This document shows positions 37,281-64,000 of a stretch of DNA of 64,000 nt, one piece after another. The stretch's first letter is position 1, and every line of letters begins with the position of its first letter. The notes beneath the pieces are model-generated. The model worked only from the letters and a program-made list of their open reading frames with translations. It ran no database searches and was not told where the DNA came from. A program made the position numbers and the translations under genes. Source of the stretch: Macrostomum lignano (lineage: Eukaryota); NCBI GenBank assembly GCA_002269645.1, contig NIVC01000114.1, forward strand, positions 62,001 to 126,000. Reading direction: 5' to 3'.

Positions 37281-37766
37281 AAAAGAGTCGAAAACATCTT
37301 TAGGTAGGCGATGATTTCACTTTGCCATTGGAATATCCGAAATGAGCAGCTAAGCTACATATCCCTATAGCAGCAAGCAACAATTGGTCCCCACCGAATG
37401 AGCTGGAATGCACGTCACCCCCCCCCCTCCTTTGTAAATGCACTTTACCTATCTGTGAGCTCAGCCTTGCAGTTTCCGTCTTGCACCTCACATCCCTCCC
37501 CTCTCCACCCTCCCTCCCCTCTCCACCCTCCCTCCCTTCTCCCCCTCCCTACCCTCTTCCTACTCCTCTTTCTCCTTCCATCTCACTCCTTTCCTTTTTC
37601 TCGCTCACAGCATGAAATCATTTTTAGTAAGCTGTATACAGACCTCCTGACTCTTGAGCGCCTGCGGATGTTACTGGGTGTACTGGTGTACTTTTGATTT
37701 GCTCACTCACTGATAAATAAATTCAATTTGCTTCAATTTGCTTCGATTAGCCAGAGTAACACATCA

Positions 37767-39189: not shown

Positions 39190-41247
39190 ATGAGTGAACA
39201 AATCAGTGCCCGTGAGGCTGCCACCACAGGAAATATCCAGGCACTCCGACATCATCTGAACCCTAAACGAGGAAGAAACAAAATATATCTTTTTTTGCAA
39301 AACCGTTTCAAAACTTGCTGCAACTAATGGTCACTTAGAAGTTGTCAAGTTTCTCGTGCCGACAGTCGCTGACCAAGCAAAAAGAGATCAGTGCTGCATC
39401 GAGGCTGTTGAATCTGCTGCAATCAATGGGCACTTAGAAATCGTCAAGTTTCTCTTCAAAAAAGTCGCTAACCAAACAAAAAGAGATCAGTGCTGCATCG
39501 AGGCTGCCAAATCTGCTGCAAGCAAGGGTCAGTTAGAAGTCATCAAGTTTCTCGTGCCGACAGTTGCTGACCAGACAAAAAGAGATCAATGCTGCATCGA
39601 GGCTGCCAAATCTGCTGCAAGCAATGGTCAGTTAGAAGTCGTCAAGGTTCTCCTCGAAAAATTCGCTAACCAAACAAAAAGAGATCAGTGCTGCATCGGG
39701 GCTGCTGAATCTGCAGCAAGCAATGGTCAGTTAGAAGTCATCAAGTTTCTCGTGCCGACAGTTGCTGACCAGACAAAAAGAGATCAGTGCTGCATCAAGG
39801 CTGCGAGAATAGCTGTAATCCGCGGTTATGTAGAAGTCGTCAAGTTTCTCCTCGAAAGAGTCGCTGATCAAACAAAAAGAGATGATTGCTGCATCGAAGC
39901 TGCCGAATCTGCTGGCAGAAATGGCCACATTGATATCGTCAAGTTTCTCGTGCCGACAGTCGCTGACCAAACAAAAAGAGATGATTGCTGCATCAAAGCT
40001 GCCGAATCTGCTGGGAGAAATGGCCACATTGAAATCGTCAAGTTTCTCGTGCCGACAGTCGCTGACCAAACAAAAAGAGATGATTGCTGCATCAAAGCTG
40101 CCGAATCTGCTGGCAGAAATGGCCACATTGAAATCTTCAAGTTTCTCGTGCCGACAGTCGCTGACCAAACAAAAAGAGATCAGTGCTGCATCAAAGCTGC
40201 CGAATCTGCTGCAAAAAATGGTCACTTCGAAATCGTCAAGTTTCTCGTGCCGACAGTCGCTGACCAAACAAAAAGAGATCAGTGCTGCATCAAAGCTGCC
40301 GAATCTGCTGCAAAAAATGGTCACTTCGAAATCGTCAAGTTTCTCGTGCCGACAGTCGCTGACCAAACAAAAAGAGATCAGTGCTGCATCGAGGCTGCGA
40401 GAATAGCTGTATTCCGTGGTCAGTTAGAAGTCGTCAAGTTTCTCCTCGAAAAAGTTGCTAACCAAACAAAAAGAAATCACTTCTGCATCGAGGCTGCTGT
40501 ATCTGCTGCAACAATTCTTGAGTGGGAAGTCGTCAAGTTTCTCGTGTCACAAGTCGCTGACCAAGCAAACAGAGATCGCTGCTGCATCAGAGCTGCCGAA
40601 TCTGCTGCAATCAATGGTCAGTGGAAAGTCGTCAATTTCATCTCGTGTCTCTTAAGTCCAGATCAGAGAGCGACTCTCCGTTTCGGATACGCAGGTCAGG
40701 CTTGCTCTCGTCTTCAAGAAGATGCCGTTGCCTCCCTCGGCGGTCTCGAACCCGACTGGCTCTTCCAATCGAGCTCCATCCTCAGCTTCACTGCAGCAAT
40801 GGCCATCGAAGGCAGGAACTCTGTTCTCAACGACACCCTCTCTCGAATGCAGCCAGCTCACATCACACAGCTGCTCCGTCTCTCCATCTCTCACAGACAC
40901 GTCGCTCTTGCTGTCACACTGATCAATGATGAGCGAGTCAGCACACAGCATGTCGATCTGCCAGACAGCACTGGAGTCACTGCTCTCATGATGGCAGCTG
41001 ATGCAGGTCATCACGAGCTCATTGAGAAACTCGTCGATCTCGGTGCGTCAGTGCGTGCTGAAGACAGTCAGGGTCGGACTGCTCTGTCACGAGCGTGCGA
41101 AGCCGGTCACGTGCGAGCAGCCAAGGCTCTGATGGACAGAGGAGCGGATGCGAGTCATCGAGACGGTCGGGGTCTGACGTGTGCGGAGGTGGCAGAGCGA
41201 TTTGAGCAGCGGCAGGTGCTGCGGCTGCTGGATCTCAGTAGAGAGGG
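39190..41247 (+). CDS. Paralog 1 exon 1: 13 full plus 1 partial 33-aa near-identical ankyrin repeats and 2-3 canonical C-terminal ANK repeats
   Basis: 99-bp units (e.g. 39961 vs 40060) with consensus CCIKAAxxAxxxGHxEIVKFLVPTVADQTKRDQ; C-terminal TGVTALMMAADAGHHELIEKL...GRTALSRACEAGH. Confidence 0.9.
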
Positions 41248-44200: not shown

Positions 44201-46909
44201 TAGCGGTCCTGTCCTACAACTCCAGGGTCCACAGCTCAACCAAGGTGGCACCGCTGACGGTGATGACCGGCCGCGACCCGCAGCTCCCGCCGAAGGTGCA
44301 GAGCAGCGAGCGGCAGTTCGACATCGGCACCTACTCGGCACAGCTGGAGCGGCGGCTCGCCCGGATCCGAGAGTTCGTCGAGGAGAACCTGCTGGTAGCC
44401 GCCGGGCAGCAGCAGAAGGCGGCTCACGACAAGAAGGCGACGGACCTGCCGCAGTTTCTCCAAGGCTTCGAGGTGCTGCTTAGCATTGAGATGCGGCGCT
44501 CGAAGGTGGCGCCCTACTGGGAGCCGGGTTGGACGGTGCTTGAGCAGCGCGGCCACTCGGTGTGCATCCGCCGCGCCTTCGGCAGCCGGCCGGTCTGCTG
44601 GGTGCACGTGAACCGGCTGCGCAAGCGGTTTGAAGCCCAGCCCGACTCTGACCAGCTCCGCCAGCCGCCGGTGACCCACCAGGTCGTGCCGGAGCGCAGC
44701 CCAGGACTTCTTTGGTGTTAGCACTGAGTGAGAGACCGAGACAGTTCTGTTATTGCGTCTGCTGTAGCTGTTTGCTTTTTTTGTGCTTCCGTTCCACTTT
44801 TTGATTCTATTACCTCATTTGCTTTTGCTCTTTTCATTGGTGGAGAATTGTAAAGTTTTATTCCTGGTCTCAGAGGCACACTCGTAGATATTGCTGAATC
44901 ATTGTCGTGTTTTAATATAGGAATGTACATCTCGCTTATATGTACATTGATGCCAATAAATATATCGTTCACTGCCAAATACCTCGGGTTACACAGATAC
45001 TTACGAGTATCAAAAGAGGTATTCAGCTATCTTTATTATGGTCGAATGAAACTCTCCATTGCGCGCTTGTCTTAAGTATTCTTATAAAGGCTTTAGGTCA
45101 ATAAAATGTTTTCATAATTACATGCCCGGTTTCGGCCTAAAAATATGAAAATTGAGTGGAAACTTCTACCTTTTGTGTTTGAAAGAATAGTAAATTCCAT
45201 TGAACTGTCGAATCCTCAAAATTCTCTCGCAGCCGAGAGAAAATATTGCTGTTTTAAATGATATTTCATTAGATTCAAAGCAACCCATCTTCTTCACTTT
45301 CCGCTCACTGCTCTCTACAGGCAGCCAACCTGCAGTGACAGACACGGCGTGCGGTGTGCGGCCTGCACAGCACACGTGCCATGCGATCCAGTGCTGCAGC
45401 AGTTTCTGTAAAGACAGAATTGAAAAACTGCTTAGAGACAGTCCTGATCAGGTTCACCTCGTTCGGGCGACCAGACCGAGCTCGACCAACGAGCTCAGAG
45501 TGAGCTTCAGCTTCCAAGAGAAACGCATCATGAGAGACCTGAGCACAGTCCAGGGCCAGCTGTTCAAACTCATCAAGTTCATCTTCAAGAGACACTTGCC
45601 GCTCACTCTGGACACACCTGGACTCAAGACCTACCATGCAAAGACTCTGCTCTTCACAATGCTCGAGAAGCATGGCGCAGATCCTGAAACTGAGACTTGG
45701 CAGCCCCACAATCTGATCGCTCTGCTCAAGGAGTCTCTCGACATGATGCTGAGCTTCATCGACTCAAGCAGCTCGCCCGATGAGTGCATGCCGCACTTCT
45801 TCATGCCCGACGCTCCGCTCTACTTCAAGAACGCTGGAATCGGCGGCGACTTCGACAACACGAAGGCGAGGGTTCAAGACCGACTTTGTGAGCTGAGAAG
45901 CGACATCGGCGGAGTGGTCGAGCAGCTGAAGAGACTCGTGAGACCTCTGCAGTCAGAGAAGTTCTACTTTCACCCGTTCACTCTGCTGCCTCTGACAGCG
46001 CCGCTTGCTGTCACCAACATCATAGAATTAATTGACTATCCACAAATGTACTACAAGTTCGCAGACGTGTACAGTGTGGTGCACCAGTGTGTGAGCGAGC
46101 TGCAGTCGGAATCGAGAAACAGAAGCACCCTGATGAGGCAGCTCAGTCTCCTGCATGAGCTGCAGTGGTGCAAATGCGCCGCCCTGTGCATGACCGCCAT
46201 GGCGTATTTGAAGTTCGGAGAATCTGAGGAGGCTGAGAGACTCACGATGAAGCTGCGGGGACATCAGGTTGAGTCGGGGTTGAAGCCATTGGATATTCGA
46301 GATAAGGGTAGATACCAGTTTAGTGAGATAAAGCTGCCAGAAGACTCTGACTGGGCGTGGAGGTTCTGCCTCCCCTGCGACTCTCCGCCTCGCTTCCCAT
46401 TCCTTCCCGAGTTCACGCAGACTCTGTTCACAGACAGACTGTCGCAGCCTCTCTCCTCCCACCTGTACGTGAACTTCCGCTGCCTGAGCTGGAGTCTCCA
46501 AGCTGAGCTGCTCCGCAATCGCGCACCTGCAATCGCATTCGATCATTGGATTGAACAGCTGCTTGGAGACCCGGACTTGGAGGAGCTGCTCACTCTGGCT
46601 CACTACAGCGACTGCCGCGAGCACGTGGAGCTCAGCCTGCAGCAGATGGAGATGATCGAGAAAGAGAGACGCGTCGCCATGGAGACGCAGGACGGGGAGA
46701 AGATCGGCTGGGTCAGGCAGAAGCGGTGGCGAGTTTCGAACCGCAGCGGCAGCGACAGCAGCGCTCAGCGCAGCAGGGAAGATGAGGAGCGGAGGCTGTG
46801 GGCGAGGGGAGGCTGCGGCGAGACGGGGTCGATTTTGGGTGTCTGGTTGCCATGGAAACTGCAGCGGAGCAGAGAGACAGCTGGACTCACGCCAAGCTCA
46901 GTCGGATGA
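39190..46909 (+). CDS. Ankyrin-repeat / cGAS-like (Mab-21, cGLR) nucleotidyltransferase fusion, paralog 1; exons 39190-41247, 41897-41950, 42301-42671, 45321-46909 (about 1356 aa after correcting a +1 T at 39290-39296)
   Basis: Junctions GG|GTGAGT (phase 2), TTGCAG|A...CG|GTGAGT (phase 2), TTCCAG|G...G|GTGAGT (phase 1) and CTACAG|GC are all in frame; the corrected CDS is 4071 nt = 1357 codons. NTase motif TGSYAEG...SDIDW; Mab-21 motifs LRVSFSFQEK, LIKFIFK, LKTYHAKTLLF, W.P.NL, MPHFFMP. Confidence 0.82.
42050..42245. repeat. 50-bp repeat (x4) in intron 2 of paralog 1; sister array at 62590-62780
   Basis: GAGTGCTGCAGCAGCTGCACTCTCAGCTCTCCTGCTTGAGATGCCAGTCT. Confidence 0.9.
42301..42671 (+). CDS. 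Paralog 1 exon 3: NTase catalytic GS/DxD motif
   Basis: RRITGSYAEGWANSLVQVNGRTAADSDIDWTVL; canonical AG/GT boundaries. Confidence 0.85.
43143..44721 (+). mobile_element. Ty3/Gypsy LTR-retrotransposon pol fragment (RNase H end, integrase HHCC and DDE), truncated, in cGLR intron 3
   Basis: VFTEHCPL...RLGRWRFLLREFNFTIKYTKGVDNVEADGLSR (RNase H end); YWPGL...CQECQTCQ (Zn finger); VAIDVL, HSDRGANFES, PYHPQGNGLVER (D,D35E). Frameshifts between the segments; no gag or RT visible. Confidence 0.92.
45321..46909 (+). CDS. Paralog 1 exon 4: Mab-21 C-lobe plus helical C-terminal region
   Basis: ORF 45200..46909; HLVRATRPSSTNELRVSFSFQEKRIMRDLSTVQGQLFKLIKFIFKRHL...LKTYHAKTLLFTMLEK. Confidence 0.87.
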
Positions 46910-47659
46910 GACTAGAGAAGCTGGAGAGACTTGATGCAGCAGCCGGAGTCCTCAAAGTCGAGTCGCAAAGTCGAGGTCGGAAAAGGAAGGCCGAGTCAGA
47001 CTGACTGCGTGGTGCGGTGTTCGGTGCTGACACAAATTTCATGTACTTTGGGTTTGTTCAATCGAACTGTTTATTTTGCTGCATGCTGGCTTGATGATGG
47101 TTCTGCGCGTTCTGCCAATTTCTGTCTAATTTAGCAACTGAAAGGCTGCTTTGATTTGTCTGCTTTTTAGGAAATAAGCACATCGAGAGACATCAAATGC
47201 GAGCAGCCCTCCTGCTATGAGCTGCAGTTTTGCACATTTGTGCTGCAATTCAATTCACACTGCATGCTAAATTGCTTTTTCCATTCAAACTGCGTGTCTG
47301 CTTTGATGCGGGCTTTTCTCTGCGATTTTGTTCTGCAGACTTCAATACCCAATTGCCAATGCTTTAAATGAAATATTCAAGCCGAATGTGCAGGTAGCAG
47401 TTATCTGATGAACCTGGAAAATTTAAAGGTTGGCTGAGTCAGTGAGAAGCTGGAGAGACTTGATGCAGCAGCTTGAGTTGAACTCGTAATTTTGTAAGCT
47501 TTTCTGACATATTTCAGATGCACTCTTGTGTCTTAGGAATTTTTTGTCCGTTCTCTTGGTTTTTTAAGTACCAGTTTTGAGTACCTGCTCAATCAGCCTT
47601 CAAATTTATTACATCATGTACTTTCATCATGTTGTCGTGTACCCTGCAGCAACTGCCAG

Positions 47660-48828
47660 CCTGACAGCTGCCTCATGAACATTCAGTGACTGACAGCCTG
47701 ACAGCTCCCTCATGAACATTCAGTGACTGACAGCCTGACAGCTCCCTCATGAACATTCAGTGACTGACAGCCTGACAGCTCCCTCATGAACATTCAGTGA
47801 CTGACAGCCTGACAGCTCCCTCATGAGCATTCAGTGACTGACAGCCTGACAGCTCCCTCATGAACATTCAGTGACTGACAGCCTGACAGCTGCCTCATGA
47901 ACATTCAGTGACTGACAGCCTGACAGCTCCCTCATGAACATTCAGTGACTGACAGCCTGACAGCTCCCTAATGAACATTCAGTGACTGACAGCCTGACAG
48001 CTCCCTAATGAACATTCAGTGACTGACAGCCTGACAGCTCCCTCATGAACATTCACTGACTGACAGCCTGACAGCTGCCTCATGAACATTCAGTGACTGA
48101 CACCCTGACAGCTCCCTCATGAACATTCACTGACTGACAGCCTGACAGCTCCCTCATGAACATTCAGTGACTGACAGCCTGACAGCTGCCTCATGAGCAT
48201 TCAGTGACTGACAGCCTGACAGCTCCCTCATGAACATTCAGTGACTGACAGCCTGACAGCTCCCTCATGAGCATTCAGTGACTGACAGCCTGACAGCTCC
48301 CTCATGAACATTCAGTGACTGACAGCCTGACAGCTCCCTAATGAACATTCAGTGACTGACAGCCTGACAGCTCCCTCATGAACATTCAGTGACTGACAGC
48401 CTGACAGCTCCCTCATGAACATTCAGTGACTGACAGCCTGACAGCTCCCTCATGAACATTCACTGACTGACAGCCTGACAGCTGCCTCATGAGCATTCAC
48501 TGACTGACAGCCTGACAGCTGCCTCATGAGCATTCACTGACTGACAGCCTGACAGCTCCCTCATGAACATTCACTGACTGACAGCCTGACAGCTGCCTCA
48601 TGAGCATTCACTGACTGACAGCCTGACAGCTGCCTCATGAGCATTCACTGACTGACAGCCTGACAGCTCCCTCATGAACATTCAGTGACTGACAGCCTGA
48701 CAGCTCCCTCATGAACATTCACTGACTGACAGCCTGACAGCTCCCTCATGAACATTCAGTGACTGACAGCCTGACAGCTCCCTCATGAACATTCAGTGAC
48801 TGACAGCCTGACAGCTCCCTCATGAACA
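47660..48828. repeat. 37-bp minisatellite CATGAACATTCAGTGACTGACAGCCTGACAGCTCCCT
   Basis: Direct. Confidence 0.97.
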
Positions 48829-49529
48829 TCATCTCCGTCATGAAATTTTATTTTGTTTTTTTATTTCTGTTTAATATTTGTCAGAAAGCGATATGAATGA
48901 TAAAATTCCCTAATGTGTACTTCAGTACTAGAAGGTTTATATTATGTTTACCTGATTGTTACAGTTCGAAAATAGATTTGAAAATAATGGAAGAATTCGT
49001 GAATGAAGTCTCGAAATTTTCGACTTTTGCCCATAATGCTGCCTTTAAAGTGCGGCAAAGAGTTTTTTGGTTAAGGAAACAAAATTTGATTTTTTACGGC
49101 GGCACAACACGAGGATTGCATTGAATTCTGAATATAATATGATAATGATAAACCAAATCACAGGCAGATCCCTAAAGACAACAATAACACAAAACACATG
49201 GAACGCTGCGGGTCAAAAAAGGTCAGCCAGCACTTCATCAGCCAGCAGGCAGTCAACGAATCGCCTGTGGCTGCCTGCAGCGTCAACAGCAGCACCTCCT
49301 GAACTTCCGGCTGTGGGTGGCCACTCAACGCGGATGACTCGCTCTGAAGCATCTGAAGTGCAGCAGCCAGCGCCGCATCAGGCTGCGGTTCGAGCGAGTC
49401 CGTCAGAGTCCTGCGCTCGGCGTTGCCTGAGCTGCGCCGCCCTCTGACGGTCAGGCAAGGCTTCGGACTGCAGGGCCGCCCTCACACAGCCACAGGCAGC
49501 CATCATCTGTATTGATCTTCACGGACATC

Positions 49530-49820
49530 AGAAACCACTGACTCATCTGTATTGGCGCCACTGACTCATCTGTATTGGCGCCACTGACTCATCTGTATTG
49601 GCGCCACTGACTCATCTGTATTGATCTTCACGGACATCAGAAACCACTGACTCATCTGTATTGGCGCCACTGACTCATCTGTATTGGCGTCACTGACTCA
49701 TCTGTATGGCGCCACTGACTCATCTGTATTGGCGTCACTGACTCATCTGTATGGCGCCACTGACTCATCTGTATCGGCGCCACTGACTCATCTGTATCGG
49801 CGCCACTGACTCATCTGTAT
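49530..49820. repeat. 22-23 bp minisatellite GCCACTGACTCATCTGTATTGGC
   Basis: Direct. Confidence 0.92.
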
Positions 49821-49952
49821 CCGGTTGCTAAGGAAATCATCAAGCTAATCCGTTTGCTAAGGAAATCATCAAGCTGATCCGGTTGCTAAGGAAATCAAGC
49901 TTATCCAGTTGCTAAGGAAGTCATCAAGCTGATCCGGTTGCTAGGGAAATCC
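49816..49952. repeat. About 29-bp repeats ATCCGGTTGCTAAGGAAATCATCAAGCTG, inverted relative to 50822-51620
   Basis: Direct; core is the reverse complement of the downstream array core. Confidence 0.85.
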
Positions 49953-50821
49953 TGTTTCTATAGCAACGCTGCGTAAATCGAAATCTGAGAATGCTTCTTA
50001 GAAAGAGTGCTCAAACCCGAACAATTCTGCAACCCAGCTTCATTCCCCTGCATCATTCGCAACCAGAAATTCGAACCAATCCACGATATGAGCCATAACA
50101 AAATGCTCATAAGTTTAGGAACAGGGATGGTCAAGGGCACCTGGTCGTGTCACCTGGCCGAGGCTGGACGGCAGCGAGAGGACCCGATGAGAGCCTGGAG
50201 CGAGGGGACCAAAGTCAAGAAGTTAGCCCCAACATTGCGGACGCCAGCCTCTGTCAAAGACACCCACCACAGCTCGGCTCGCACCATCAGCAGCATCAAG
50301 GATCTCAGCAGTGCGCACATCAGCAATGAGCCGCTCAGCCCAGGACAGCCAAGACCAGCTCAGCAGGAGTTCATTGTGCTTCCCATGCTCAATTGTCTGC
50401 ACAAGTGAAAGTTAGAAAAGGTCAGCAGGAGTTCATTGTGCTTCCCACGCTCAATTGCTTGCACAAGTGAAAGTTGGAAAAGTTCAGCCGAATGAAGCTG
50501 GTTTGCACTGAGAACGTCTGGTTCTCACGGAAACTGCTGAGACCAGCGCCCAGGATCTGCGACAGCTGAGACTCTGGTGGAGCTGCCGGAGGATGCAGGA
50601 CGGCCGGGTCCGCTCAGGCCGTGTTCCCATAAATCTGGCTTGCAGACGTCCAAACTTTCTCACCAAATAAAATTGCCAGGCTTTCTTGCTGTTGCTTTTG
50701 AAAAGGAGGCGCGAGCGAACGCATATAACCACCTGTACTGACCAAAAATAAACCTCTTATAAACTGCCAGCCTTATTCAAATGCAAATCTCACATCTGAC
50801 ACCCAAAATTTACTCGGACCA

Positions 50822-51620
50822 ATCATTCCCCTAGCAACCTGATCCGGGATTCCCCTAGCAACCTGATCCGGGATTCCCCTAGCAACCTGATCAGGGATTC
50901 CTCTAGCAACCTAATCAGGGATTCCCCTAGCAAACCTGATCAGGGATTCCTCTAGCAACCTGATCTGGGATTCCCCAACAACCTGATCCGGGATTCCCTA
51001 ACAACCTGATCCGGGATTCCCTAACAACCTGATCCGGGATTCCCTAACAACCTGATCCGGGATTCCCTAACAACCTGATCCGGGATTCCCCTAGCAATCT
51101 GATCCGGGATTCCCCTAGCAACCTGATCCGGGATTCCCTAACAACCTGATCCGGGATTCCCTAACAACCTGATCCGGGATTCCCTAACAACCTGATCCGG
51201 GATTCCCCTAGCAACCTGATCCGGGATTCCCTAACAACCTGATCCGGGATTCCCTAACAACCTGATCCGGGATTCCCTAACAACCTGATCCGGGATTCCC
51301 CTAGCAACCTGATCCGGGATTCCCTAACAACCTGATCCGGGATTCCCTAACAACCTGATCCGGGATTCCCTAAGAACCTGATCCGAGATTCCCTAACAAC
51401 CTGATCCGGGATTCCCTAACAACCTGATCCGGGATTCCCCTAGCAATCTGATTAAGGATTCCCCTAGCAACCTGATCCGGGATTTCCCTAGACAACCTGA
51501 TTAAGGATTCCCCTAGCAACTTTATCCGGTATTCCCCTAGCAACCCTATTAAGGATTCCCCTAGCAACCCTATTAAGGATTCCCCTAGCAACCCGATCAA
51601 GGATTCCTCTAGCAACGCGA
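50822..51620. repeat. 22-23 bp minisatellite GGGATTCCC(C)TA(G/A)CAACCTGATCC
   Basis: Direct. Confidence 0.96.
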
Positions 51621-52199
51621 TCTGCTAATTATAGACATGTTTGATTAGCAATCAATGAATTTCCCTAGTATCCGGTTTTCGTGTTGGAAATAAAAAATGA
51701 AATGCTTTCCCAGAGCGCCATTGGTGACTGAAGGTACCCAATGAACACAGCTTCTCCTTCCCGACTACAGCAATGAGGCAGCACAGAATGGGCCATGGCT
51801 GATGACGCATTGGCAGTCACTGATGCAGCACTAAAGGGCCAGCAAATGCACATAATAGCTGATGCTGGGCCAGCATTGATACTCACAGCAACTGAACTCA
51901 AATAATGGCATTTTTACACTAACTGTGCTCATAAATAATCTGTCTCAGTTCTGGCTCATAGACACAATCACACAGGGTGCACAGCGGCCCTGACTGTCTA
52001 ATCGGCAGGCATGTACACCCTCTGTGGCCTGGGGGTTGGCGGTACACGAGCTGCAACTCCATCAATCTTTAGTCACTACTGACTACTGCTTTTTAAGATT
52101 GTTAGTATTAGGTAAGGAGAATGCTCAGCATAATTATTATTTTATAACTGTCTGGTATTATGAGAGGTGTATTGACAAAAATAATAAAACATCTTCACG

Positions 52200-52280
52200 C
52201 ACGGGCGTGGAGGTTCCGCCTCTCCTGCGACTCTCCGCCTCGCTTCTCATTCCTTCCCGAGTTCACGCAGACTCTGCTCT
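52200..52280 (+). pseudogene. About 80-bp relic of a cGLR exon-4 C-terminal segment
   Basis: GGGCGTGGAGGTTCCGCCTCTCCTGCGACTCTCCGCCTCGCTTCTCATTCCTTCCCGAGTTCACGCAGACTCTG is nearly identical to 46352-46427 (AWRFCLPCDSPPRFPFLPEFTQTL). Confidence 0.8.
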
Positions 52281-52556
52281 CGTGAGATGCTGCTCAGCTG
52301 TGGCAAACCCAGACGGTGTCGGCATATCGACCAGGTGAAGCCTTGGCGGTCTAAACGACTAAAGGCTGGGGATTCCAGCTGCCTGTTTGTTGCATCAAGC
52401 TCCGGGTTTTCTGATTGGTCGAACCCGGGATGACCAGCTCGACTCTGATTGGCTGAGCTCGAAACTCTGAAATCCTCTCGACCTTTGAGACCCCATTGGA
52501 CTTGGCAGGTGCGAGCAGAAATCATAAAAATGGGTAAGGCTAGCCAACAAGGTGAA

Positions 52557-52870
52557 AGATAGGTGATCATATATCAACTGTGACAGGTAGGTGATCATAT
52601 ATCTAATGTGACAGGTAGGTGATCATATATCAAATGTGACAGGTAGGTGATCATATATCAAATGTGACAGGTAGGTGATCATATATCGACAGATAAGCCA
52701 CTCAACAAAAGTAGATACCGCAGAAACCATTGACTCCTATTGACCCCATTGACCCCATTGACCCCATTGACCCCATTGACCCCATTGACCCCATCGACCT
52801 CATTGACCCCGTTGACCCCATCGACCTCATTGACCCCGTTGACCCCATTGATCCCATTGACCCCATTGAG
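52557..52870. repeat. 28-bp repeat GACAGGTAGGTGATCATATATCAAATGT followed by 9-bp TTGACCCCA array
   Basis: Direct. Confidence 0.9.
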
Positions 52871-52889
52871 CCCCTTAGAGTGAGTCTTC

Positions 52890-53402
52890 AATGAGTGAGT
52901 CACCAATGTGGCCTCAGCTCACAGTCACCAATGAGTGAGTCACCAATCCGGCCTCAGCTCACAGTCACCAATGAGTGAGTCACCAATCTGGCCTCAGCTC
53001 ACAGTCACCAATGAGTGAGTCACCAATGTGGCCTCAGCTCACAGTCACCAATGAGTGAGTCACCAATGTGGCCTCAGCTCACAGTCACCAATGAGTGAGT
53101 CACCAATCTGGCCTCAGCTCACAGTCACCAATGAGTGAGACACCAATCTGGCCTCAGCTCACAGTCACCAATGAGTGAGTCACCAATCTGGCCTCAGCTC
53201 ACAGTCACCAATGAGTGAGTCACCAATCTGACCTGAGCTCACAGTCACCAATGAGTGAGTCACCAATCTGGCCTCAGCTCACAGTCACCAATGAGTGAGT
53301 CACCAATCTGGCCTGAGCTCACAGTCACCAATGAGTGAGTCACCAATCTGACCTGAGCTCACAGTCACCAATGAGTGAGTCACCAATCTGGCCTCAGCTC
53401 AC
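52890..53402. repeat. 40-bp minisatellite CACCAATGAGTGAGTCACCAATCTGGCCTCAGCTCACAGT
   Basis: Direct. Confidence 0.96.
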
Positions 53403-53430
53403 TCCAGTGTGCCAATTCCATGGCGCCAAT

Positions 53431-53970
53431 AGGGCGCCAATGCCAGGCCGCAGTGAAGGGGCAGCAGGAAAAGGGCGCCAATGCCAGGCCGCAGTGAAGG
53501 GGCAGCAGGAAAAGGGCGCCAATGCCAGGCCGCAGTGAAGGGGCAGCAGGAAAAGGGCGCCAATGCCAGGCCGCAGTGAAGGGGCAGCAGGAAAAGGGCG
53601 CCAATGCCAGGCCGCAATGCAGGGGCAGCAGGAAAAGGGCGCCAATGCCAGGCCGCAATGCAGGGGCAGCAGGAAAAGGGCGCCAATGCCAGGCCGCAAT
53701 GCAGGGGCAGCAGGAAAAGGGCGCCAATGCCAGGCCGCAATGCAGGGGCAGCAGGAAAAGGGCGCCAATGCCAGGCCGCAATGCAGGGGCAGCAGGAAAA
53801 GGGCGCCAATGCCAGGCCGCAATGCAGGGGCAGCAGGAAAAGGGCGCCAATGCCAGGCCGCAATGCAGGGGCAGCAGGAAAAGGGCGCCAATGCCAGGCC
53901 GCAATGCAGCGGCAGCAGCAAAAGGGCGCCAATGCCAGGCCGCAATGCAGTGGCAGCAGCAAAAGGGCGC
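53431..53970. repeat. 41-bp GC-rich minisatellite GGGCGCCAATGCCAGGCCGCAATGCAGGGGCAGCAGGAAAA
   Basis: Direct; source of the overlapping ORFs 53380-54342. Confidence 0.96.
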
Positions 53971-56900
53971 CGTGGCTGCGGTGCAGAGGCTGCATTTGAG
54001 CGCCGGTCCTCAGCGGCTGTCCTGGCGGGGTCGCCAGAAGGGCAGCTCAAAACTTCAGTGCTTCCGCAGCAGCCCCTCAGCTCAGCCCAGTGGATTCGCC
54101 CCTGCTGCAAAATGGCTGAGTCCCGCACTGCTCAAACTCAAACTGCTGCAGGATGGTGGAAGCAAGAGGAGAGCAAATGCTCTGTGGCAGGTGGGCGAGC
54201 GGTCAGCCCTGGCAACACGGGAGACATAGGAGCGGTCAGCCCTAGCAACACGGGAGACATAGGAGCGGTCAGCCATGGCAACACGGGAGACAGGAGCGGT
54301 CAGAACAAAAAAGTGTTCTGCATCACAAATTTTCATGGTTGAGTTTTATAACATAGTGAAAATATTTTCTTTGAAACTTCCCCTACCATAAACACTGAGC
54401 TCGTGCTCAGTTTCCACTGAAACTCAGTTGTGTTATGTAGTATTGTGAGCAGACAGTCAGCTGCCTCCGCCAATCTTCACAAGCTGCTCTTTGGAAACGA
54501 ACCGGCCTGGGCCGCCTAAGCCTTCCACGTCTGCTGCGCTCCCCGGCCAGCTCATCCATTGTTTTGGGGTGGACCAGAGGTTCCGCTTTCCAATGTGCGT
54601 TTCAGCCCCACTTCTGCCAGTACGCAGCCAAGTTCTACTCAATTGTCTGAGGGTAGGGATTACCTGCAGTTTCCCTGTCAGCCATCCGGATGTACGGGAA
54701 TGAATTTCTGTGACGGCTGCGTAAGCTCCGTTTCCCTCCCAGCCTTCCCTCCAGCTCTCCCCTGCATTGTTTGGTCTTCCTACCTCTGACCCTCTGTCTC
54801 TTCATTTCATCAAGTACCGTGTTTGCTTGCTGCAGAGCCTCCTGTCTGCTTTTGCGAGTTCCGCCTTCTCTGCAAACTGTGAGTCTCTGCCTGCCGCTCC
54901 ATCTGCAGATTGACGAGTTCAAAATCATAACTGGCAATCGGTGAGTCCTGCTCTGCCCTGCTTCAGTCTGCTGGGCTGGCATTGGAGTGAGCTGTCAGTT
55001 AGGCTTGCGATTAGGCTGGGAAAATGTGCTGACGCCCCCGGCGCTAACGAAGCCGTCACAGCCTCACAGTCACTTCAATATGGGGCCGGATGATTAGCAG
55101 AAGCTGACTGACCATCTCACATTCCTACAGATAACTGATAACCCAATTAACTGTTTAAATTGGTGCCACTTGAAACAACAGCGGTTATAACAAAGGATAA
55201 TAATAATTAGAGACACGCAGACGATATACTACTGTCAGTAGGGTGAGCCGTCACTTTGAACAGCCGGTCAGGTCGCTTATAAATATGAATAAAAAACAGA
55301 GCTGGCAGTGGGAGAAGCCCGGACCGGTGCGGCCGGCTTTGAGACTCGCCGCACAGCAGGGGGCCGGCAGGTTGCATTTCTAACAGGCAACCAGCACACT
55401 GTAACACCCTGATTCTATGATATTGTGCATGACTGTCGATTTGTTGACGGTATTGTCTGTGTCTGCTGTCTACAACTGGATGATATTGTATTTTTCGAGC
55501 CATTAAATTTCTTCTCAGTCCCCAAAACGAGGACTCAGAAATGATAGGTTGAGGACTCAGAAACGATAGGTTGAGGACTCAGAAAGAAACGATTTTAGGA
55601 CTTAAACGATTCAATCGTCTCATACGAGTAGAAGCAAGATGAATACAAAAGTGCAACAACGAGGCAACAAGTAGTTAAAAGTGGCAAAAATTGTCCAAAA
55701 GTTCATCACATTATTAACTGTGTAAATGTAGACAGTCACTCCTATGCAACAGCTGAATTAAAGCATTGCACTTGCTCCCATCCTGTTTGCGCTTTTCGAA
55801 AAAGAATCGCCTCAGAAGATATTTCCAACTGCCTCGACTCGGTTCTTCAATCGGTTTGGAGACAAGAAGTGCTTTGGTTTCACCTTGCAAATCTGTGCAA
55901 TCTCATGAGGTCACGCAAATTGTTAAGATGAGGAGCCAGCACTGAATGTATGACTCTGTCTGCCTCTGTCTATGCTAGTCTGGCCAAAATGAGATAGCCA
56001 TATGCGTTTCCAACCCTCTTCTCCTGCCAATGCGCTGTCAAATTGTACTCATTGGTGTGCGGGCAGGGCCTTCTTTCCTGTGCTCTGTGCTTGCACCATC
56101 AGCCCTCCTGTCGTGCGGGAATGACTTTCTGTGACGGCTTTGTACGCTCGTTTCGACAAGCGCTCACTCTGCTGTGCATTTCTGTGCTTTGCTTGACTTT
56201 TGGCTTGCCATTCTCTTCCAGATTGCTTTCCAACCAGCGTTCAATTCCACTATAGCAGCCCACCATAATTTATTTGGTCTCTTCTTTTTCCACAAGTACC
56301 GTGTTTGGTTATTGCAGAGCGCCCTGTCTGCTTTTGAGAGTTGTGCTTTCTCTGCAAGTCTCTGCTGCCAGCAGCCTTGCGAGTTCAGAACTGGCCATCG
56401 GTGAGTCCTGCACTGCCCTGCTGCAGTCTGCTGTGTTGGCGTTGGAGTGAGCTGTCGATTTCCCACTCACTGAATCCTTTACTCTGAATTCACAGACTGG
56501 CTTCTCCTTCTCTTCTCCCTCCTTCTTCCCCTCTTCTTTCCCCTGTTTTTCTCGCTCCCCTCTTTCTCCCTCGAGTTCAGGTTTACTCTGGGCTGAGACC
56601 TGACCACTGTGACTACTTAAACCGCTCAGTAGGAGAGATTTTAAGATCTCAGACTGCACTGAGGCACAGTGTGTCAGCTCAGCTTCATCAAGTACAGCTT
56701 GGCGTGGCCGCTGCAACCGCAGACTCTCCGTTGCCATGCTGGGTGCACAGAGGCGAAGGCGGCGACTCAGCGCTCATGCTCGGGAGAGAAGTTTCGGCTG
56801 CTCAGGCCGGGGTGGTCGGCCTCGCATGAGACTACAGAGTGTGGGCAGCTGAGAGACTTTGGCAACCTGTTGCACATACGTTTGAAATGCATGCCTCTCT

Positions 56901-57100
56901 GACTGCAGCCGTGACTGACATCTGCCACTCTGACAACATCTAGGAATCATTAGGTATTCCCTTCACAAGTCTTCAAAATCACGACGCCACCCTTTTTCTC
57001 TCTGACCGTTTCTCTAAATCCATTAAAGTACTCGTAATAAACCAGAAGAAAACTATTTACGTACCTTCTAGATGAAGCACGCATCAGCACACCAAGCGAA

Positions 57101-60100
57101 ATGAGCCAACAGGTCAGATCCGATGAGGCCGCCAAGACAGGAAATATCCAGGCACTCCAACATCATCTGGACCTTCAGAGAGAGACAAACAGAAAATATC
57201 TTTTTTGCAAAAGGTATTCTAAACTTGCCGCAAGAAAGGGTCAGTTAAAAGTAGTCAAGTTTCTCGTCTCTAAAGTCGCTGACCCAACAAGAAGAGATCG
57301 GTGCTGCATCGAGGCTGCAGAATCTGCTGCATACAATGATCAGTGGGATGTCATCAAGATTCTCGTGCCTAAAGTCGCGGACCAAAAAAAAAGATATGAT
57401 TGCTGCATCGAGGCAGCTAAATGTGCTGCACACAAAGGTAAGATAGAAGTCGTCAAGTTTCTCGTGCCGACAGTCGCTGACCAGACAAAAAGAGATCAGT
57501 GCTGCATCAAGGCTGCCACATCTGCTGCAAGAAATGGTCAGTTAGAGGTCGTCAAGTTTCTCGTGCCTGAAGTCGCTGTCCAAACAAAAAGATATGATTG
57601 CTGCATCGAGGCTGCCACATCTGCTGCAATAAATGGTCACTTAGAAGTCGTCAAGTTTCTCGTGCCGACAGTCGCTGACCAAACAAAAAGAGATCAGTGC
57701 TGCATCAAGGCTGCTAAATCTGCTGCAAGAAAAGGTCAGTTAGAAGTCGTCAAGTTTCTCGTGCTGACAGTCGCAGACCAAACAAAAAGAGATCAGTGCT
57801 GCATCAAGGCTGCTAAATCTGCTGCAAGAAATGGTCACTTAGAAGTCGTCAAGTTTCTCGTGCTGACAGTCGCAGACCAAACAAAAAGAGATCAGTGCTG
57901 CATCAAGGCTGCAGAATCTGCTGCTGACAATTGTCAGTGGGAAGTCGTCAAGTTTCTCGTGCCGACAGTCGTTGAACAAACAAAAAGAGATCAGTGCTGC
58001 ATCAAGGCTGTCAAATCTGCTGCTGACAATTGTCAGTGGAAAGTCGTCAAGTTTCTCGTGCCGACAGTCGTTGACCAAACAAAAAGAGATCAGTGCTGCA
58101 TCAAGGCTGCGAGAATAGCTGTAATCAGTGGTCAGTGGGAAGTCGTCAAGTTTCTCGTGCCGACAGTCGCTGACCAAACTAGAAGAGATCAGTGCTGCAT
58201 CGAGGCTGCTGAAACTGCTGCTGACAATTATCATTGGGAAGTCGTTAAGTTTCTTGTGCTGACAGTCGCTGACCAAAGAAAAAGAAATCAGTACTGCATC
58301 CAGGCTGCACAATATGCTACAGAAAAGAATCAAGGAGAAGCGGTTGATTTTCTCATCTCGTGTCTCTCAAGTCCGGATCAGAGAGCGAATCTCCGTATCC
58401 ATTGCGCAGTCACGGCTTGCTCTCGTCTTCACGAAGATGTCGTTGCCTCCCTCGGCCTCGAGCCCGAATGGCTCTTCCAATCCAGCAACATCCTCAACTT
58501 CACCGCAGCAATGGCCATCGAAGGCAGGAACTCTGTTCTCAACGACACCCTCTCTCGAATGCAGCCACCTCACATCACACAGCTGCTCCGTCTCTCCATC
58601 TCTCAAAGATACGTCGCTCTTGCTGTCACACTGATCAATGATGAGCGAGTCAGCACAGAGCATGTCGATCTGCCAGACAGCACTGGAGCCACTGCTCTCA
58701 TGCTGGCAGCTGATGCAGGTCATCACGAGCTCATTGAGAAACTCATCGATCTCGGCGCGTCAGTGCGTGCTGAAGACAGTCAGGGTCGGACTGCTCTGTC
58801 ACGAGCGTGCGAAGCCGGTCAGGTGCGAGCAGCCAAGGCTCTGATGGACAGAGGAGCGGATGAGAGTCATCGAGACGGTCGGGGTCAGACGTGTGCGCAG
58901 GTGGCAGAGCGATTCGAGCGGCGGGAGGTGCTGCGGCTGCTGGATCCCATTGGAGCGGGGTGAGTGTTGGTCTAGGCAAAACTGAGCCAGGTCATGTTTG
59001 CAAGCGAAGAAGACTACGATTGAACAGAACCATGCTCACTGGCAAGCGCAAATGTACAAACTGTTAAGGGTAAAACGATAGCGCGCAAGAATGACCAGTC
59101 ACGGGAGGGAGAGAGAGAGAAAGTGACAGTGAAACAACGTGAAAACTAAAGTACAACTCGAACATTGAGTGAGGCGGGAATTTCGCGAACATCTTTTTAT
59201 GATATTATTTTTTTAAGCTAAGCACTATAAATCTAGTGCCCCCTTACGGGGCGCACAATAAGCAATCAAAGAACCAATTCCTTCTTCTGTTTTATAAATC
59301 ACCTTGTTCGAGTAAAATTGTCACGGACAAAGATGTTTGCTAAGAATCTCTATTTTGTGAAAGTAACAAAAATACGAAAAAATACAACAAAAAAGCCTTC
59401 ACAAAGACAACACGCATTTGTCCTAATAAAATCTATAACTCAGACCGCAAGCATCCCCCTAAATAGCAAGCATCCTCCGGTAGCATGCACCCCTTCCCAG
59501 ATAGCAAGTACCCCCAGATGGAGAGCAACCCAGACAGAAAGCATCCTACCCCCCCCCCCCCCCCAAGATACAAAGCATACGCCCAATTACAACAGCAAGC
59601 ACCCCCCAAACAATAGCAAGAACCCCAAAATACAATCCCAAGTATCCCCCAGATAGCATACCCCAAGATGGCAAGATCCTTAGCAATAATCCTTAGTTCA
59701 TCAAGTGCAGTAATCCTTGGTTTATCAAGTACAATAATCATTAGTTTATCAAGTGCAGTAATCCTTGGTTCATTAGGTGCAATAATCCTTAGTTCATCAA
59801 GTGCAGTAATCCTTAGTTCATTAAGTGCAATAATCCTTGGTTTATCAAGTGCAATAATCCTTGGTTTATCAAGTGCAGTAATCCTTGGTTTATCAAGTGC
59901 AGTAATCCTTGGCTTATTAAGTGCAGTAATCCTTGGTTTATCAAGTGCAGTAATCCTTGGTTTATCAAGTGCAGTAATCCTTGGTTTATCAAGTGCAATA
60001 ATCATTAGTTTATCAAGTGCAGTAATCCTTGGTTTATCAATTGCAAGAATCATTGGTTTATCAAGTGCAGTAATCCTTGGTTCATTAAGGCAATAATCCT

Positions 60101-61099
60101 TGGTTCATCAATTGCAAGAATCATTGGTTTATCAAGTGCAATAATCCTTGGTTCATTAAGTGCAATAATCCTTGGTTCATCAATTGCAAGAATCATTGGT
60201 TTATCAAGTGCAGTAATCCTTGCGCTGTCCCTTCTTCATCCCGTGCCTACTTAGAGTATTGTTTGTGCTCCTCGTCACCCCATCTACTTTTAGAATCCCA
60301 AATGGTGACGCAAGGCTCCTGACCTCTCCCTCACCCCGATGACTCGATCATCACCCTCCTCTTTTGCAGCCTTTTCTCATGCTTTTGTTCTCTTATCAAA
60401 ATTTCTCATGCGACACCCACCCCTCCTCCGCCTCTATTGTTCTCTTTTACTATTTTTTGTTCTCCTTTGTGCACACAATTATCACATTTTTCAGATTTTC
60501 TCGTTCTTCTGTTCTCGTTTTCGCATCCAATTGGCACCCCTCTCTCAATTTTTGCTCTGCTATTGTTCTCGGTTCTCCCCAATTATCCCCGTTTTCCATT
60601 TCCTTTGATCTCGTTCTGGATCCCATTGTTCTTATTTGCTTACGCAACACTTCTTCGGCTCCCCGCTGTGCTCTTTTTCCCCTACCCCTCCTCCAAATTG
60701 CGCAATTCTCCCATTTCTCATGTTGCTATGCCGTTCTCATACTTCTCATCATGACTCATTGACGCCATTTTCCCGGCAGCCAATCAGAGAGAGGGAGTCT
60801 TGGAAACGAGCTTGCAGCGGCCGCTGTGAGGACTATTTAAAGAAGTGATTTTCGGCTTGATAGCCTCCAGAAGTCTTTCTTTCCTTCCTTCGGATGGTTG
60901 CCTTTGGCCTTTGCTACGGCCAACGCCTAGGGCTTGTACCTTCGGTCCTACCTTTGGACTCGTTTCGTCTATAAGACGAACCTATGCCGGCCCGCGGTCC
61001 AGCATGCTCAGCATCACCTGAGCTTCATCAGCGCCTCGTCGCTACAGCGCATCGCCACTTCACTACCTGCCTGTCTGCAGTCAACAGCTCACTCCATCG

Positions 61100-61130
<31 letters not shown>

Positions 61131-63204
61131 TCTCTCTGTGCAGCTTCCGGTGAGTTCGTGTACTGGTTTGTACTCTAATTGCCTTTGCTTATTTGGGGTT
61201 TGCTTATTTCCCATTGCTTGATTAGAGGACTGAGCCGATTGTGAACCGTACTTTGCTGCATTTTACTCAATAGTGAAGCCGCCGAATCGCCTGCTTATTT
61301 CGCCTAAGGGCCTAATTATTAACAATTACTAAACTCCTCATTAGGCACTCTTTCACCACCATTTCAGTCATGAGTTGCTGAGCCTTTCTCCCTGGGTGAA
61401 AAAGCATAAGGAAGTTTGGGTAAGCCAATGGCCTCTCCCTGTGAAACGCCCGCCTGTGTGTGCGTGCTGCGGGTCCGTGTGTGTCAGTAGAGGGGATTAG
61501 CGATTTGTGGCACAGAATGGCAGCAGGGAGGTTGCAACCCCATGCTGACGCGTCCCTTCGCCCTGAGCAATCTGAACTTTAGCTAGCACATGTTCACCTC
61601 ACACTACTCTTAGTAATTGAAGCCGGAAGTCCGCCTCATTCACAGCCACAAAGGATCTCCTGCTGAGAAATGCTCCAGATTGATCCCAGAGTTCCCGATT
61701 GTGCCCAAAGCAAAGTCCCTGTACTCGGTTGCATGCGCCTCCCCTGTTAGCTTAAATCCTCTGGTAATCAATCCAGACAGGGCTCTAGCCTGATAAGGTC
61801 TGGTCATAGATCCAGGTGAGCCCGGTCATATAGAGTGGTGGCAGCCACTCGGTCACGCCAATTATTGCACCTTGGCTGCAGGTGGGGCCCATGTGGGTCC
61901 TCGGCCCTCTGGTTTCGAGGTCCTTCAGGTCATTCAGGGCAAAGGTCCTTCAGGTCATTGCCCGGTCATAGGCAGCCTACGGTCATTGCTCCTCCCTGCG
62001 AAGCGGACGGTCATCAAGGGCGATTACATCAAAGTGCAATAATTCTTGGCTTAGCAAGTGCTACGTGGCAAAATGGCGAGCACAGTAAAGAAGAGGAGAA
62101 AAGATGGGCATCAGTTTGCTCAGGTGGAGCCCACGGCAGACCGCAGCCGGTTTGATATTTTTAAATCATCAAGCATCCAATATACTAAAACTAAAGTCTC
62201 AAATCTCCGGTCCAGCAATCGAGCTTCTCCTTCAATCTGCGGAATTCACTCGCTCTTGGCTCGACTCTCTCTCTTGCTCATTGATACTTCTACCTTAAAG
62301 AGCGTTGAAAATTGATGAAGCTGCAGATGAAGATGAATTTTTAACTCAATCAAAAATGTGTGGCACAAAAAACATTGTAAATCCTCACTGCTGTGAGAAC
62401 CCTCGCTTTCCTTCCCGCATTGCAGAAGCCGAGAGGCCCGGCGGGCAGCCGCTCACGGCTTGGATTCGCGCCTCCATCGGTGAGTCTGACCGGTTCGGCT
62501 TTCACTGCCGCATTGCGCCTTCTAACAGGCTGGCAGCTTGGGGCAGAAATTGCAGCGAAACTCAGCAGGGTTGAGATTGGGTTGGACTGAGTGCTGCAGC
62601 AGCTGCACTCTCAGCTCTCCTGCTTGAGATGACAGTCTGAGTGCTGCAGCAGCTGCACTCTCAGCTCTCCTGCTTGAGATGACAGTCTGAGTGCTGCAGC
62701 AGCTGCACTCTCAGCTCTCCTGCTTGAGATGACAGTCTGAGTGCTGCAGCAGCAGCTGCACTCTCAGCTCTCCTGCTTGTTCTGACCATCCAACTCTGAG
62801 CAATTCACCCACACGCATCTCGGATCATTCCAGGCTCCCAGACGACTCCCAGCAAGACAGGCGCCTGAGCGAGGAGCTGCATCGACTGCTCAGCGATGCG
62901 GGATTCACCGAGCAGAGAGCAGAGTGTCAGCAGAGACTGGCTGACTGGCTGCAACAAGTCGTTCGAGTCCTCACACTGGAAGGCGATCGCAGGCAGATGA
63001 CGGGCAGCTACGCAGAGGGCTGGGCCAACAGTCTGGTGCAAGTGAACGGCAGGACAGCTGCAGACTCGGACATTGACTGGACTGTGCTGGTTGCTGGGCA
63101 GGAGTTTCATCTGGAAGGTGGCTGCAAAGGAAGATCTGGATCCTGCCGAAACGCCACTTGGCTGCAGGTCACGGAGGGCCACGCACAGGTGGCAGTGGGA
63201 GCAG
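57101..63204 (+). CDS. Ankyrin-repeat / cGAS-like NTase fusion, paralog 2 (partial; exon 4 beyond the window); exons 57101-58959, 62426-62479, 62834-63204
   Basis: Intact 620-codon ANK ORF with 11 full plus 1 partial 33-aa repeats ending GG|GTGAGT. The 54-bp exon 2 and 371-bp exon 3 have the same sizes and phases as in paralog 1. Exon 3 encodes MTGSYAEGWANSLVQVNGRTAADSDIDWTVL. Confidence 0.82.
59683..60221. repeat. 24-bp minisatellite ATCAAGTGCAGTAATCCTTGGTTT in intron 1 of paralog 2
   Basis: Direct. Confidence 0.96.
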
Positions 63205-63379
63205 GTGAGTGAGGCTGGGTTCATCATCAGAATGCTGAGATCCGCATGCAACTGGAAGCCCATTAACTTTGCTCAAATATAAATTCGCAACCGAGTGGTG
63301 CCCAGCTTCCAGCAGCTTCTGTGACTGTGTCTTTACCTGGGTCGGTTTGGGTGTCCAGTCCCGAGTGCAATATGTAATA

Positions 63380-64000
63380 TACGTGATATTATATATTGTG
63401 ATGTATATTGTGACGCTCTGTCTGTACTTTTTTTGGATACGAGCAGACGTGACGACGCTCTTCGAAAGTAATTCGATCCATTTGGTGTTGTGACACTCAG
63501 AGTTCACGCTGCGGCTCGAGGTGTGGTGACACTCTCGAGTGCTTCTAGTCTCGATACTGTAGGTTGTACAAACTGTATAGAGTAGCCGGTACAGTACTAC
63601 AAGAAGCTATATCATCTCCGGCGTTATGACGCTCTGGCAAGAACTCTGCCTAACAAGCTCCCCAGAAAAGAATGAACTCAAGCAGCAGGCGGCTTACCAG
63701 TGGCCAAATCGCCGTTCGTACGTTTATTGATTTGCTCGTTGGTCTTGACTTCTTGACTTGACTTCTTGACTGGTTTCTGACTTCTCAATTCTCAAAGACT
63801 CTTCTCACTAAGGCTCTTATGTTTCGTTTATCGTAGTAGCTAGTGTTGCTGTTTATTACGTCAATTCTCGCGCTTGCACTCTCGGAGCACACCAAAACAC
63901 AAAAGCGCAAACAGCACGAAGGGCGTGGGCAAGACCCAGAGCCGCACTATAAATAACAACCAAACCCTGGGGCCGATGGCCTCACCGGCTAAGCCCACAA
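63380..64000. mobile_element. Unidentified insertion, possibly an LTR, in intron 3 of paralog 2
   Basis: Homology to paralog 1 intron 3 ends at about 63352. The sequence then reads TGTAATATACG... with TATAAATA and TTTATT motifs. No coding evidence. Confidence 0.25.

Follow-up and report, generated by a model that had tools for sequence, protein, structure and literature searches.

The 64,000-nucleotide stretch of Macrostomum lignano DNA analysed here (hereafter the window; contig NIVC01000114.1 of assembly GCA_002269645.1, positions 62,001 to 126,000 of the forward strand) raises the question of what its segment 57101-63204 encodes, and whether this segment belongs to a second gene of a tandem cluster in which ankyrin (ANK) repeats are joined to an enzyme related to cGAS. 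The copy in question is called paralog 2, and its tandem partner, 18 kb away, is called paralog 1. We conclude with good confidence that 57101-63204 covers the 5' part, exons 1 to 3, of another tandem, Macrostomum-specific gene for an ANK plus cGAS-like (Mab21-family) nucleotidyltransferase (NTase). The family, and its label as a set of candidate cGAS-like receptors (cGLRs), have already been catalogued by Li et al. (2023, Cell; preprint PMC9980059); enzymatic activity is not established by that catalogue.

Exon structure of the second copy

Both gene models were rebuilt by hand, base by base. Within 57101-63204, paralog 2 comprises exons 1-3. Exon 1 (57101-58959) starts with the ATG at 57101, runs for 619 codons plus two nucleotides, ends in phase 2 and is followed by a GTGAGT donor from 58960; from the N to the C terminus it encodes an N-terminal cap, an ANK-like array, a linker and three canonical ANK repeats. 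Intron 1 (58960-62425, 3466 bp) is followed by exon 2 (62426-62479, 54 bp, with an AG acceptor and a GTGAGT donor), and exon 3 (62834-63204, 371 bp, ending in phase 1) encodes the spine helix and the first half of the NTase core. Intron 3 starts at 63205 and runs to the end of the window at 64000. The exons, the introns, the tandem repeats of paralog 2, its upstream block, the spacer relic described below and paralog 1 are all on the plus strand. The three exons hold 761 codons without a stop or frameshift. Paralog 2 is open and, by prediction, correctly spliced through exon 3, and its exon 4 is outside the window.

The comparator, paralog 1 (39190-46909), has exons at 39190-41247, 41897-41950, 42301-42671 and 45321-46909, so that its exons 2 and 3 are also 54 and 371 bp long; its intron 1 is 649 bp. 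In both paralogs every donor is GTGAGT and every acceptor AG, and the splice phases are equal. BLASTN aligns 57226-58966 of paralog 2 with 39514-41254 of paralog 1 at 86% identity, and 62281-63327 with 41765-42794 at 92% (E = 0 for both). The 3' end of paralog 1, after ...GWVRQK, may hold one more short intron, as the C-terminus of P0001 suggests.

Intron 2 carries a 50-bp tandem repeat, at 62587-62779 in paralog 2 and at 42057-42246 in paralog 1, with 3.8 copies in each as counted by Tandem Repeats Finder (TRF). The repeat is common to M. lignano relatives (BLASTN to loci L001-L003, 91-93%). Exon 2 is 54 bp long also in the M. lignano loci L001, L003 and L004, and exon 3 of the relatives is 362-380 bp long with a constant phase (four loci compared). 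The recurrence of the 54-bp exon 2 and of the same-phase exon 3 across four M. lignano loci marks this exon layout as a trait of the family. An earlier sequence-only reading of the window had described the equal exon sizes, phases and intron-2 repeats of the two copies, as well as an intron 1 of 3.5 kb in one and 0.65 kb in the other; the rebuilt models and TRF agree with it on all these points.

ANK solenoid and cGAS-like core

The array of paralog 2 (57239-58318) is a 99-bp (33-amino-acid) tandem repeat of 10.9 units by TRF, and that of paralog 1, at 39316-40639, has 13.4 units. An invariant CC dyad (RDQCCI.AA) is present in each 33-residue array unit of both paralogs. The Pfam domain Ank_2 matches paralog 2 with E = 1.7e-61 and paralog 1 with E = 1.9e-89. 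AlphaFold models exon 1 of paralog 2 as a continuous alpha-solenoid (predicted local distance difference test, pLDDT, 93.3), and the best Foldseek matches of this solenoid are those of AnkB and ankyrin-1 (E = 1e-13 to 1e-12). Therefore, by its 33-residue repeats, profile match and stacked solenoid the region qualifies as ANK repeats, with the caveat that the canonical beta-hairpin is absent from the modelled array units: each consists of a 17-residue and a 10-residue helix, and the canonical ANK form is seen in the last three repeats only.

The array shares the 33-residue period, the strong Pfam ANK matches and the best structural matches with the 24-repeat domain of AnkB/ankyrin-1 and with designed ankyrin repeat proteins (DARPins). 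Unlike long ankyrin solenoids, it has [KE]AA[KE] in place of TPLH, and its CC dyad occupies the hairpin-tip position. Variability within the array, measured as entropy from the unit table, is highest at positions 7, 11, 12, 14 and 15, and the most variable of these (11, with 12) correspond to sites in helix 1 at which DARPins are randomised; RDQCCI, the equivalent of the hairpin, hardly varies across the array units. Most units are nearest to a unit of their own array (a9 and a10 are 100% identical, b5/b6 98% and b7/b8 95%); unit duplication is how the arrays diversify. Along the modelled solenoid the CC dyads form 11-13 stacked cysteine pairs, for which a metal, redox or lipidation role may be raised as a question.

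Exon 3 of paralog 2 encodes MTGS and, after 20 residues, DIDW, with the GS motif at 63003-63008 and the predicted catalytic acids D-I-D at 63069-63077. The 32-residue GS...DID core, TGSYAEGWANSLVQVNGRTAADSDIDWTVLVA, is identical in paralogs 1 and 2, and their canonical ANK caps share about 90% identity, in keeping with the near-identical motif and cap noticed earlier. The third acid belongs to exon 4, which also encodes the helix-bundle lobe and a C-terminal extension. The active-site motif of Li et al. for cGLRs is h[QT]GS-X8-20-[DE]h[DE]h-X50-90-h[DE]h (PMC9980059), and the spacing in the present family, h[QT]GS-X20-DhDh-X57-hDh, fits it. Among 38 diverse family members, GS is kept in all 38, the first Asp in 35, the second in 34 and the third in 31. 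In paralog 1 the third element reads QHT rather than h[DE]h, and the motif of Li et al. fails there. ELRVSFSF was considered as the third catalytic strand and rejected, as it aligns with W-R-L-S-F-S of cGAS; it is the D in RPAQDTCHA that supplies the third acid.

The fold was assessed on paralog 1, in which exon 4 is available. Pfam Mab-21_C (PF20266) matches its exon 4 with 27.8 bits against a cut-off of 24.1, and UniRef gives the name 'Mab-21 domain-containing' to some clusters farther out in the family. The AlphaFold model of its Mab21 part has a pLDDT of 87.2 and a predicted template-modelling score (pTM) of 0.90. In the Foldseek search of this model against PDB, the top 31 matches are all cGAS (best E = 5.6e-8, probability 1.00, target-normalised template-modelling score 0.57), with alignments of about 355-395 columns against chains of about 350 residues, and MAB21L1 (structures 5eog and 5eom) forms the next group. 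The domain and fold by which Li et al. recognise cGLRs are thus found in paralog 1 and in the family, and paralog 2 shows only the half-core of exon 3.

The likeness to human and mouse cGAS and to Drosophila cGLR1 therefore lies in the predicted bilobed NTase cage with its Mab-21_C helix bundle and in the hTGS...DhDh...hDh motif of the family, the spacing of which is within the allowed range. However, sequence identity to cGAS is just about 15%, and a PDB sequence search gave E = 0.065 with the C-lobe only; cGAS also has no known counterpart of the long non-canonical ANK solenoid and of the C-terminal extra region of about 250 amino acids. In paralog 1 this extension is encoded at 46000-46909 in exon 4 (residues ~330-578 of the modelled part), is well folded in the model and lies beyond the cGAS-aligned part. 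It is conserved family-wide, with the motifs FYFHPFTLLPL, DWAWRFCLPC, HLYVNFRCLSWSLQAELL and DLEELLTLAHYSD.

All strong protein matches of the window are from M. lignano (76-87% identity). ANK repeats and Mab-21_C are combined in 45 M. lignano homologues. An exhaustive phmmer search returned 146 clusters (50% identity), of which 98 had E<1e-10, and the sampled clusters that bear a name are M. lignano in nine of nine cases. Judged by these comparisons, the gene family is a large lineage-specific radiation in Macrostomum. ANK-repeat fusions are a minor cGLR architecture (Li et al. 2023, PMC9980059), shared with the coral Stylophora pistillata. Table S2 of that study gives Ank_2 domains for several M. 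lignano accessions, and its Table S3 lists five M. lignano proteins (#89-93) cloned for a biochemical screen (PMC9980059). The cloned PAA68676.1 (BOX15_Mlig016402g1, here P0003; PMC9980059) is 81% identical to paralog 1. The window genes resemble such candidates in the order of ANK array, canonical cap, Mab21/cGAS-like NTase and C-terminal extension, in their 76-87% identity over cap and NTase, and in the 54-bp exon 2, the phase of exon 3, the 50-bp repeat of intron 2, the spacer satellites and the tandem arrangement. They differ from them in the number and sequence of their ANK units, in being at most 87% identical to any public protein, in the frameshift and Asp-to-His change of paralog 1 (see below), and in that paralog 2 lies only partly within the window.

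Tandem cluster and divergence of the copies

The block upstream of paralog 2, which includes promoter-proximal sequence (56638-57100), is homologous to 38729-39189 before paralog 1 (BLASTN, 80-85%), and a part of it of about 220 bp occurs three times, at 36642-36869, ~38729-38950 and 56638-56855. The triplicated upstream block of the sequence-only reading is therefore borne out by BLASTN. The block of paralog 2 is 94.4% identical to that before the third gene of locus L003. A stretch of some 1.3 kb ahead of paralog 1 is present in two tandem copies (35656-36929 and 37606-39007; 86% identity), which contain a 34-bp satellite of 12 and 20 copies; the first of the two is not followed by an ANK exon.

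The inter-gene spacer contains an exon-4 relic of 77 bp (52203-52279), recognised by tblastn over 26 amino acids at 81% identity to exon 4 of paralog 1. The spacer block around it (52000-52400) has counterparts of 95-96% identity in the spacers of L003 (two copies) and L004, and this spacer is present in each tandem unit. The relic is an old fragment duplicated together with the tandem unit and does not stand for a third gene of the window. The earlier count of at least three copies in about 30 kb, which rested on this relic and on the duplicated promoter block, does not hold, and the window holds two gene copies. The spacer as a whole (47652-54303) consists of minisatellites strung together, their periods being 37, 23, 29, 28, 9, 40, 41 and 33 bp, and the window is generally rich in minisatellites. 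Most of the spacer recurs, in the same order, in L001, L003 and L004, so that the duplicated unit is the gene plus about 10 kb of spacer.

A similar arrangement is found on the M. lignano contig NIVC01001976.1 (GCA_002269645.1), where at least three genes follow each other with a pitch of 14-20 kb (P0022 at ~136.6 kb, P0046 at ~150.6 kb and a third gene from ~170.6 kb). The window runs colinear with this contig from P0046 through the spacer to its third gene, and the spacer DNA is 94-97% identical. The upstream region and first 1 kb of paralog 2 are 94.4% identical to this third gene, as against about 80% to paralog 1. A tandem arrangement is also seen at loci L001 and L002.

Divergence between paralogs 1 and 2 is uneven. 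The linker and cap are 85.6% identical in amino acids with a ratio of nonsynonymous to synonymous substitution rates (dN/dS) of 1.32, exon 3 is 87.8% identical with dN/dS 0.71, and the array is 71% identical with dN/dS 0.65; the arrays do differ in sequence and unit number, as had been noticed from the letters alone. In pairs of close family members, exon 4 shows 82-88% amino-acid identity and dN/dS 0.6-1.0. At the family level, identity is 27-62% for the ANK array, 81-93% for the cap and 73-84% for the Mab21 part. Of the notion of a conserved enzyme combined with a divergent sensor, the second half is borne out in so far as the array is far more diverged family-wide. However, the enzyme is not strongly conserved: dN/dS is 0.6-1.3, and introns 2 and 3 (95-96%) are more alike between the two paralogs than the exons (93-94%). 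Therefore, 'conserved enzyme' holds for the catalytic motif only.

Homology of intron 1 of paralog 2 to that of paralog 1 is confined to 62092-62425, and the remainder bears a lineage-specific insertion of about 3.1 kb (58967-62091). Within the insertion TRF found a 24-bp satellite at 59635-60235, and an orphan unit of this satellite sits at 62032-62061, so that the 1.8-kb piece between them (60236-62031) is a nested insertion. Neither terminal inverted repeats nor long terminal repeats were found around the intron-1 insertion, just low-complexity GA/CT arms. Near 60781-60840 the nested piece has boxes that resemble CCAAT and TATA, and at about 61150 it has a GTGAGT donor. A known spliced-leader or small nuclear RNA gene was considered for this promoter-like, donor-bearing piece and ruled out by an Rfam scan of the whole window, in which no RNA family was matched.

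Paralog 1 shows lesions of its own. At 39290-39296 it has a T7 run in place of the T6 of paralog 2 and of two M. lignano genes, and the resulting +1 frameshift, if it does not reflect a sequencing error in the homopolymer, leads to a stop at 39325-39327. The codon for the third catalytic acid is CAC (His) at 45371-45373, as against GAC (Asp) in four M. lignano genes, within a 23-nt context that is otherwise identical. In addition, a Ty3/gypsy remnant with RNaseH and integrase open reading frames (ORFs; 43143-44721) lies in its intron 3. These features suggest that paralog 1 is probably dead or inactive and likely a pseudogene. The two window copies thus diverge by gain and loss of ANK units, by transposable-element and satellite insertions in introns 1 and 3, and by near-neutral point substitutions. 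Tandem paralogs, a lineage-specific expansion and pseudogenes or relics, which are the marks of birth-and-death evolution, are all present, and the proposal of a tandem birth-and-death cluster is upheld by the degenerate paralog 1, by the intron insertions of transposable elements and satellites, and by the turnover of ANK units within the arrays.

Functional state and role of the second copy

By homology, an intact member of the family would fold into an ANK solenoid at the N terminus followed by a cGAS-like cage. Binding of a partner or ligand, or auto-inhibition of the enzyme, is the probable task of the solenoid, and under its control a nucleotide second messenger could be made at the GS / D-h-D / D site, in the manner of a cGLR; the messenger would then serve defence. 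Several observations weigh against placing paralog 2 among such working receptors, and they concern first its integrity and then the role of the family.

Paralog 2 might be a dead or truncated duplicate, in which exons 1-3 are open only through youth and the gene has been cut or disrupted in intron 3. We consider this a serious possibility, somewhat short of probable. Homology of its intron 3 to paralog 1 and to the M. lignano relatives breaks at about 63327-63370 and is followed by at least 630 bp of unrelated sequence; 63328-64000, which may be a transposable element or the result of a rearrangement, gave no BLASTN match within the window or in the M. lignano loci L001-L004, and tblastn found no exon-4 match after 63206 in the window. 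Intron 3 usually measures about 0.2-0.7 kb in the relatives. In P0046, however, an M. lignano gene annotated as intact, it reaches about 6 kb; a long interrupted intron 3 is therefore compatible with function, and exon 4 of paralog 2 may lie further downstream. Outside the array, dN/dS between paralogs 1 and 2 is near 1 (about 0.7-1.3 over the regions compared), and exon 1 of paralog 2 has dN/dS 0.75 against its M. lignano counterpart. When polarised with outgroups, the derived substitutions are even, with 15 in paralog 1 and 17 in paralog 2, and give no sign that paralog 2 is better conserved than its broken neighbour. However, values of 0.6-0.8 are general among the annotated family members, the 32-residue catalytic core is unaltered, and the 761 codons remain open over three exons with all splice sites canonical. 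On the side of a dead duplicate are also the degenerate state of the adjoining paralog 1 and the public record: paralog 2 has no identical counterpart among public proteins (query of cap plus exons 2-3; best 84% among the matches listed, which were dominated by ANK candidates), and an exact look-up in public assemblies found no record of its exon-1 ORF as a called gene.

A second explanation leaves the gene alive and questions its role. The family would be Mab21/cGAS-like in fold without being a cGLR-type immune sensor, having another product or role, or serving, like Mab21L1 or MID51, as a scaffold that does not catalyse, while its ANK array takes part in ordinary protein docking. This seems to us rather less likely than not, and there is evidence in both directions. 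None of the five M. lignano proteins #89-93 is flagged among the 15 active enzymes (PMC9980059). The planarian S. mediterranea is reported to have no recognisable cGAS and STING (PMC13563047). A search with the C-terminal domain of human STING listed only deuterostomes, and hence no Macrostomum protein, among its best 120 matches, which makes it a weak test and uninformative for Macrostomum. The Pfam model of the Mab-21 NTase domain, PF03281, has no match at E<=1 in exon 3 of either copy or in the exon 2-3-4 product of paralog 1, and the family-conserved C-terminal extension has no known counterpart in cGAS. On the other hand, the full GS / DhD / D set with cGLR spacing is kept in 31 of the 38 members, unlike in Mab21L1-type proteins, which have been described as lacking a predicted functional active site (PMC9980059). 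Structurally, cGAS-DNA-nucleotide complexes outrank MAB21L1. The fold is common to Mab21L1/L2 and other non-immune Mab21 proteins; however, Mab21L1/L2 is a conserved single-copy developmental gene, whereas the present family is a fast-evolving lineage-specific radiation. A lineage-specific radiation in tandem arrays, rapid evolution and a member fused to a caspase are what immune gene families typically show. The caspase-fused protein, M. lignano P0027 (BOX15_Mlig012150g1), has, in this order, an NTase/Mab21 region (amino acids 2-546), ANK repeats and a caspase p20 domain (PF00656). The fusion of a caspase to the same NTase hints at a possible part in death or immune signalling.

The explanation that one locus was falsely duplicated, or its haplotypes mis-assembled, so as to give two paralogs, to which the highly repetitive, satellite-rich genome and the duplicated karyotype of M. 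lignano might lend some colour, is effectively refuted and extremely improbable, since the copies differ by 7-20% in sequence, in ANK units (10.9 vs 13.4), in their intron-1 and intron-3 insertions and in upstream regions that are just 80% identical, and since the duplication is old, the same gene-spacer-gene order recurring on NIVC01001976.1 with the 5' region of paralog 2 closest, at 94.4%, to the downstream gene there.

We therefore retain the reading of 57101-63204 as the 5' part of a second ANK plus cGAS-like NTase gene. Of the expanding immune-receptor family proposed earlier, the lineage-specific tandem expansion is supported; 'sensor' and 'immune receptor' go beyond it, being interpretations, and the screened M. 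lignano proteins are outside the 15 active enzymes (PMC9980059). Macrostomum may hold a large, fast-evolving cGAS-like repertoire (about 100 clusters at 50% identity, in tandem), with specificity set by a hypervariable, non-canonical, cysteine-studded ANK solenoid and not by the surface of the NTase. This repertoire would then consist of diversified protein- or ligand-sensing receptors, possibly with non-STING signalling and with some members wired to caspase. We offer the two proposals jointly and as speculation, since we think them doubtful.

Macrostomum is an early-branching flatworm, and the phylum is otherwise reported to be without immune cGLRs and STING. If intact members are active, they would show a cGAS-like enzyme re-targeted by a modular repeat array, and a tandem-array receptor expansion in a phylum thought largely to have lost the pathway. 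The window itself adds two unannotated members to the family, one a probable pseudogene and the other open but incomplete in the window, and it documents how the family diversifies through ANK-unit duplication, intron insertions and near-neutral substitution.

Two further ORFs, unrelated to the family, lie upstream of the cluster in the window. The one at 23913-25262 encodes 449 amino acids with an EF-hand pair (E = 1e-9), and its product has no exact public record. The other, at 5797-6177, encodes 126 amino acids and gives an Sds3-like match (E = 9e-7).

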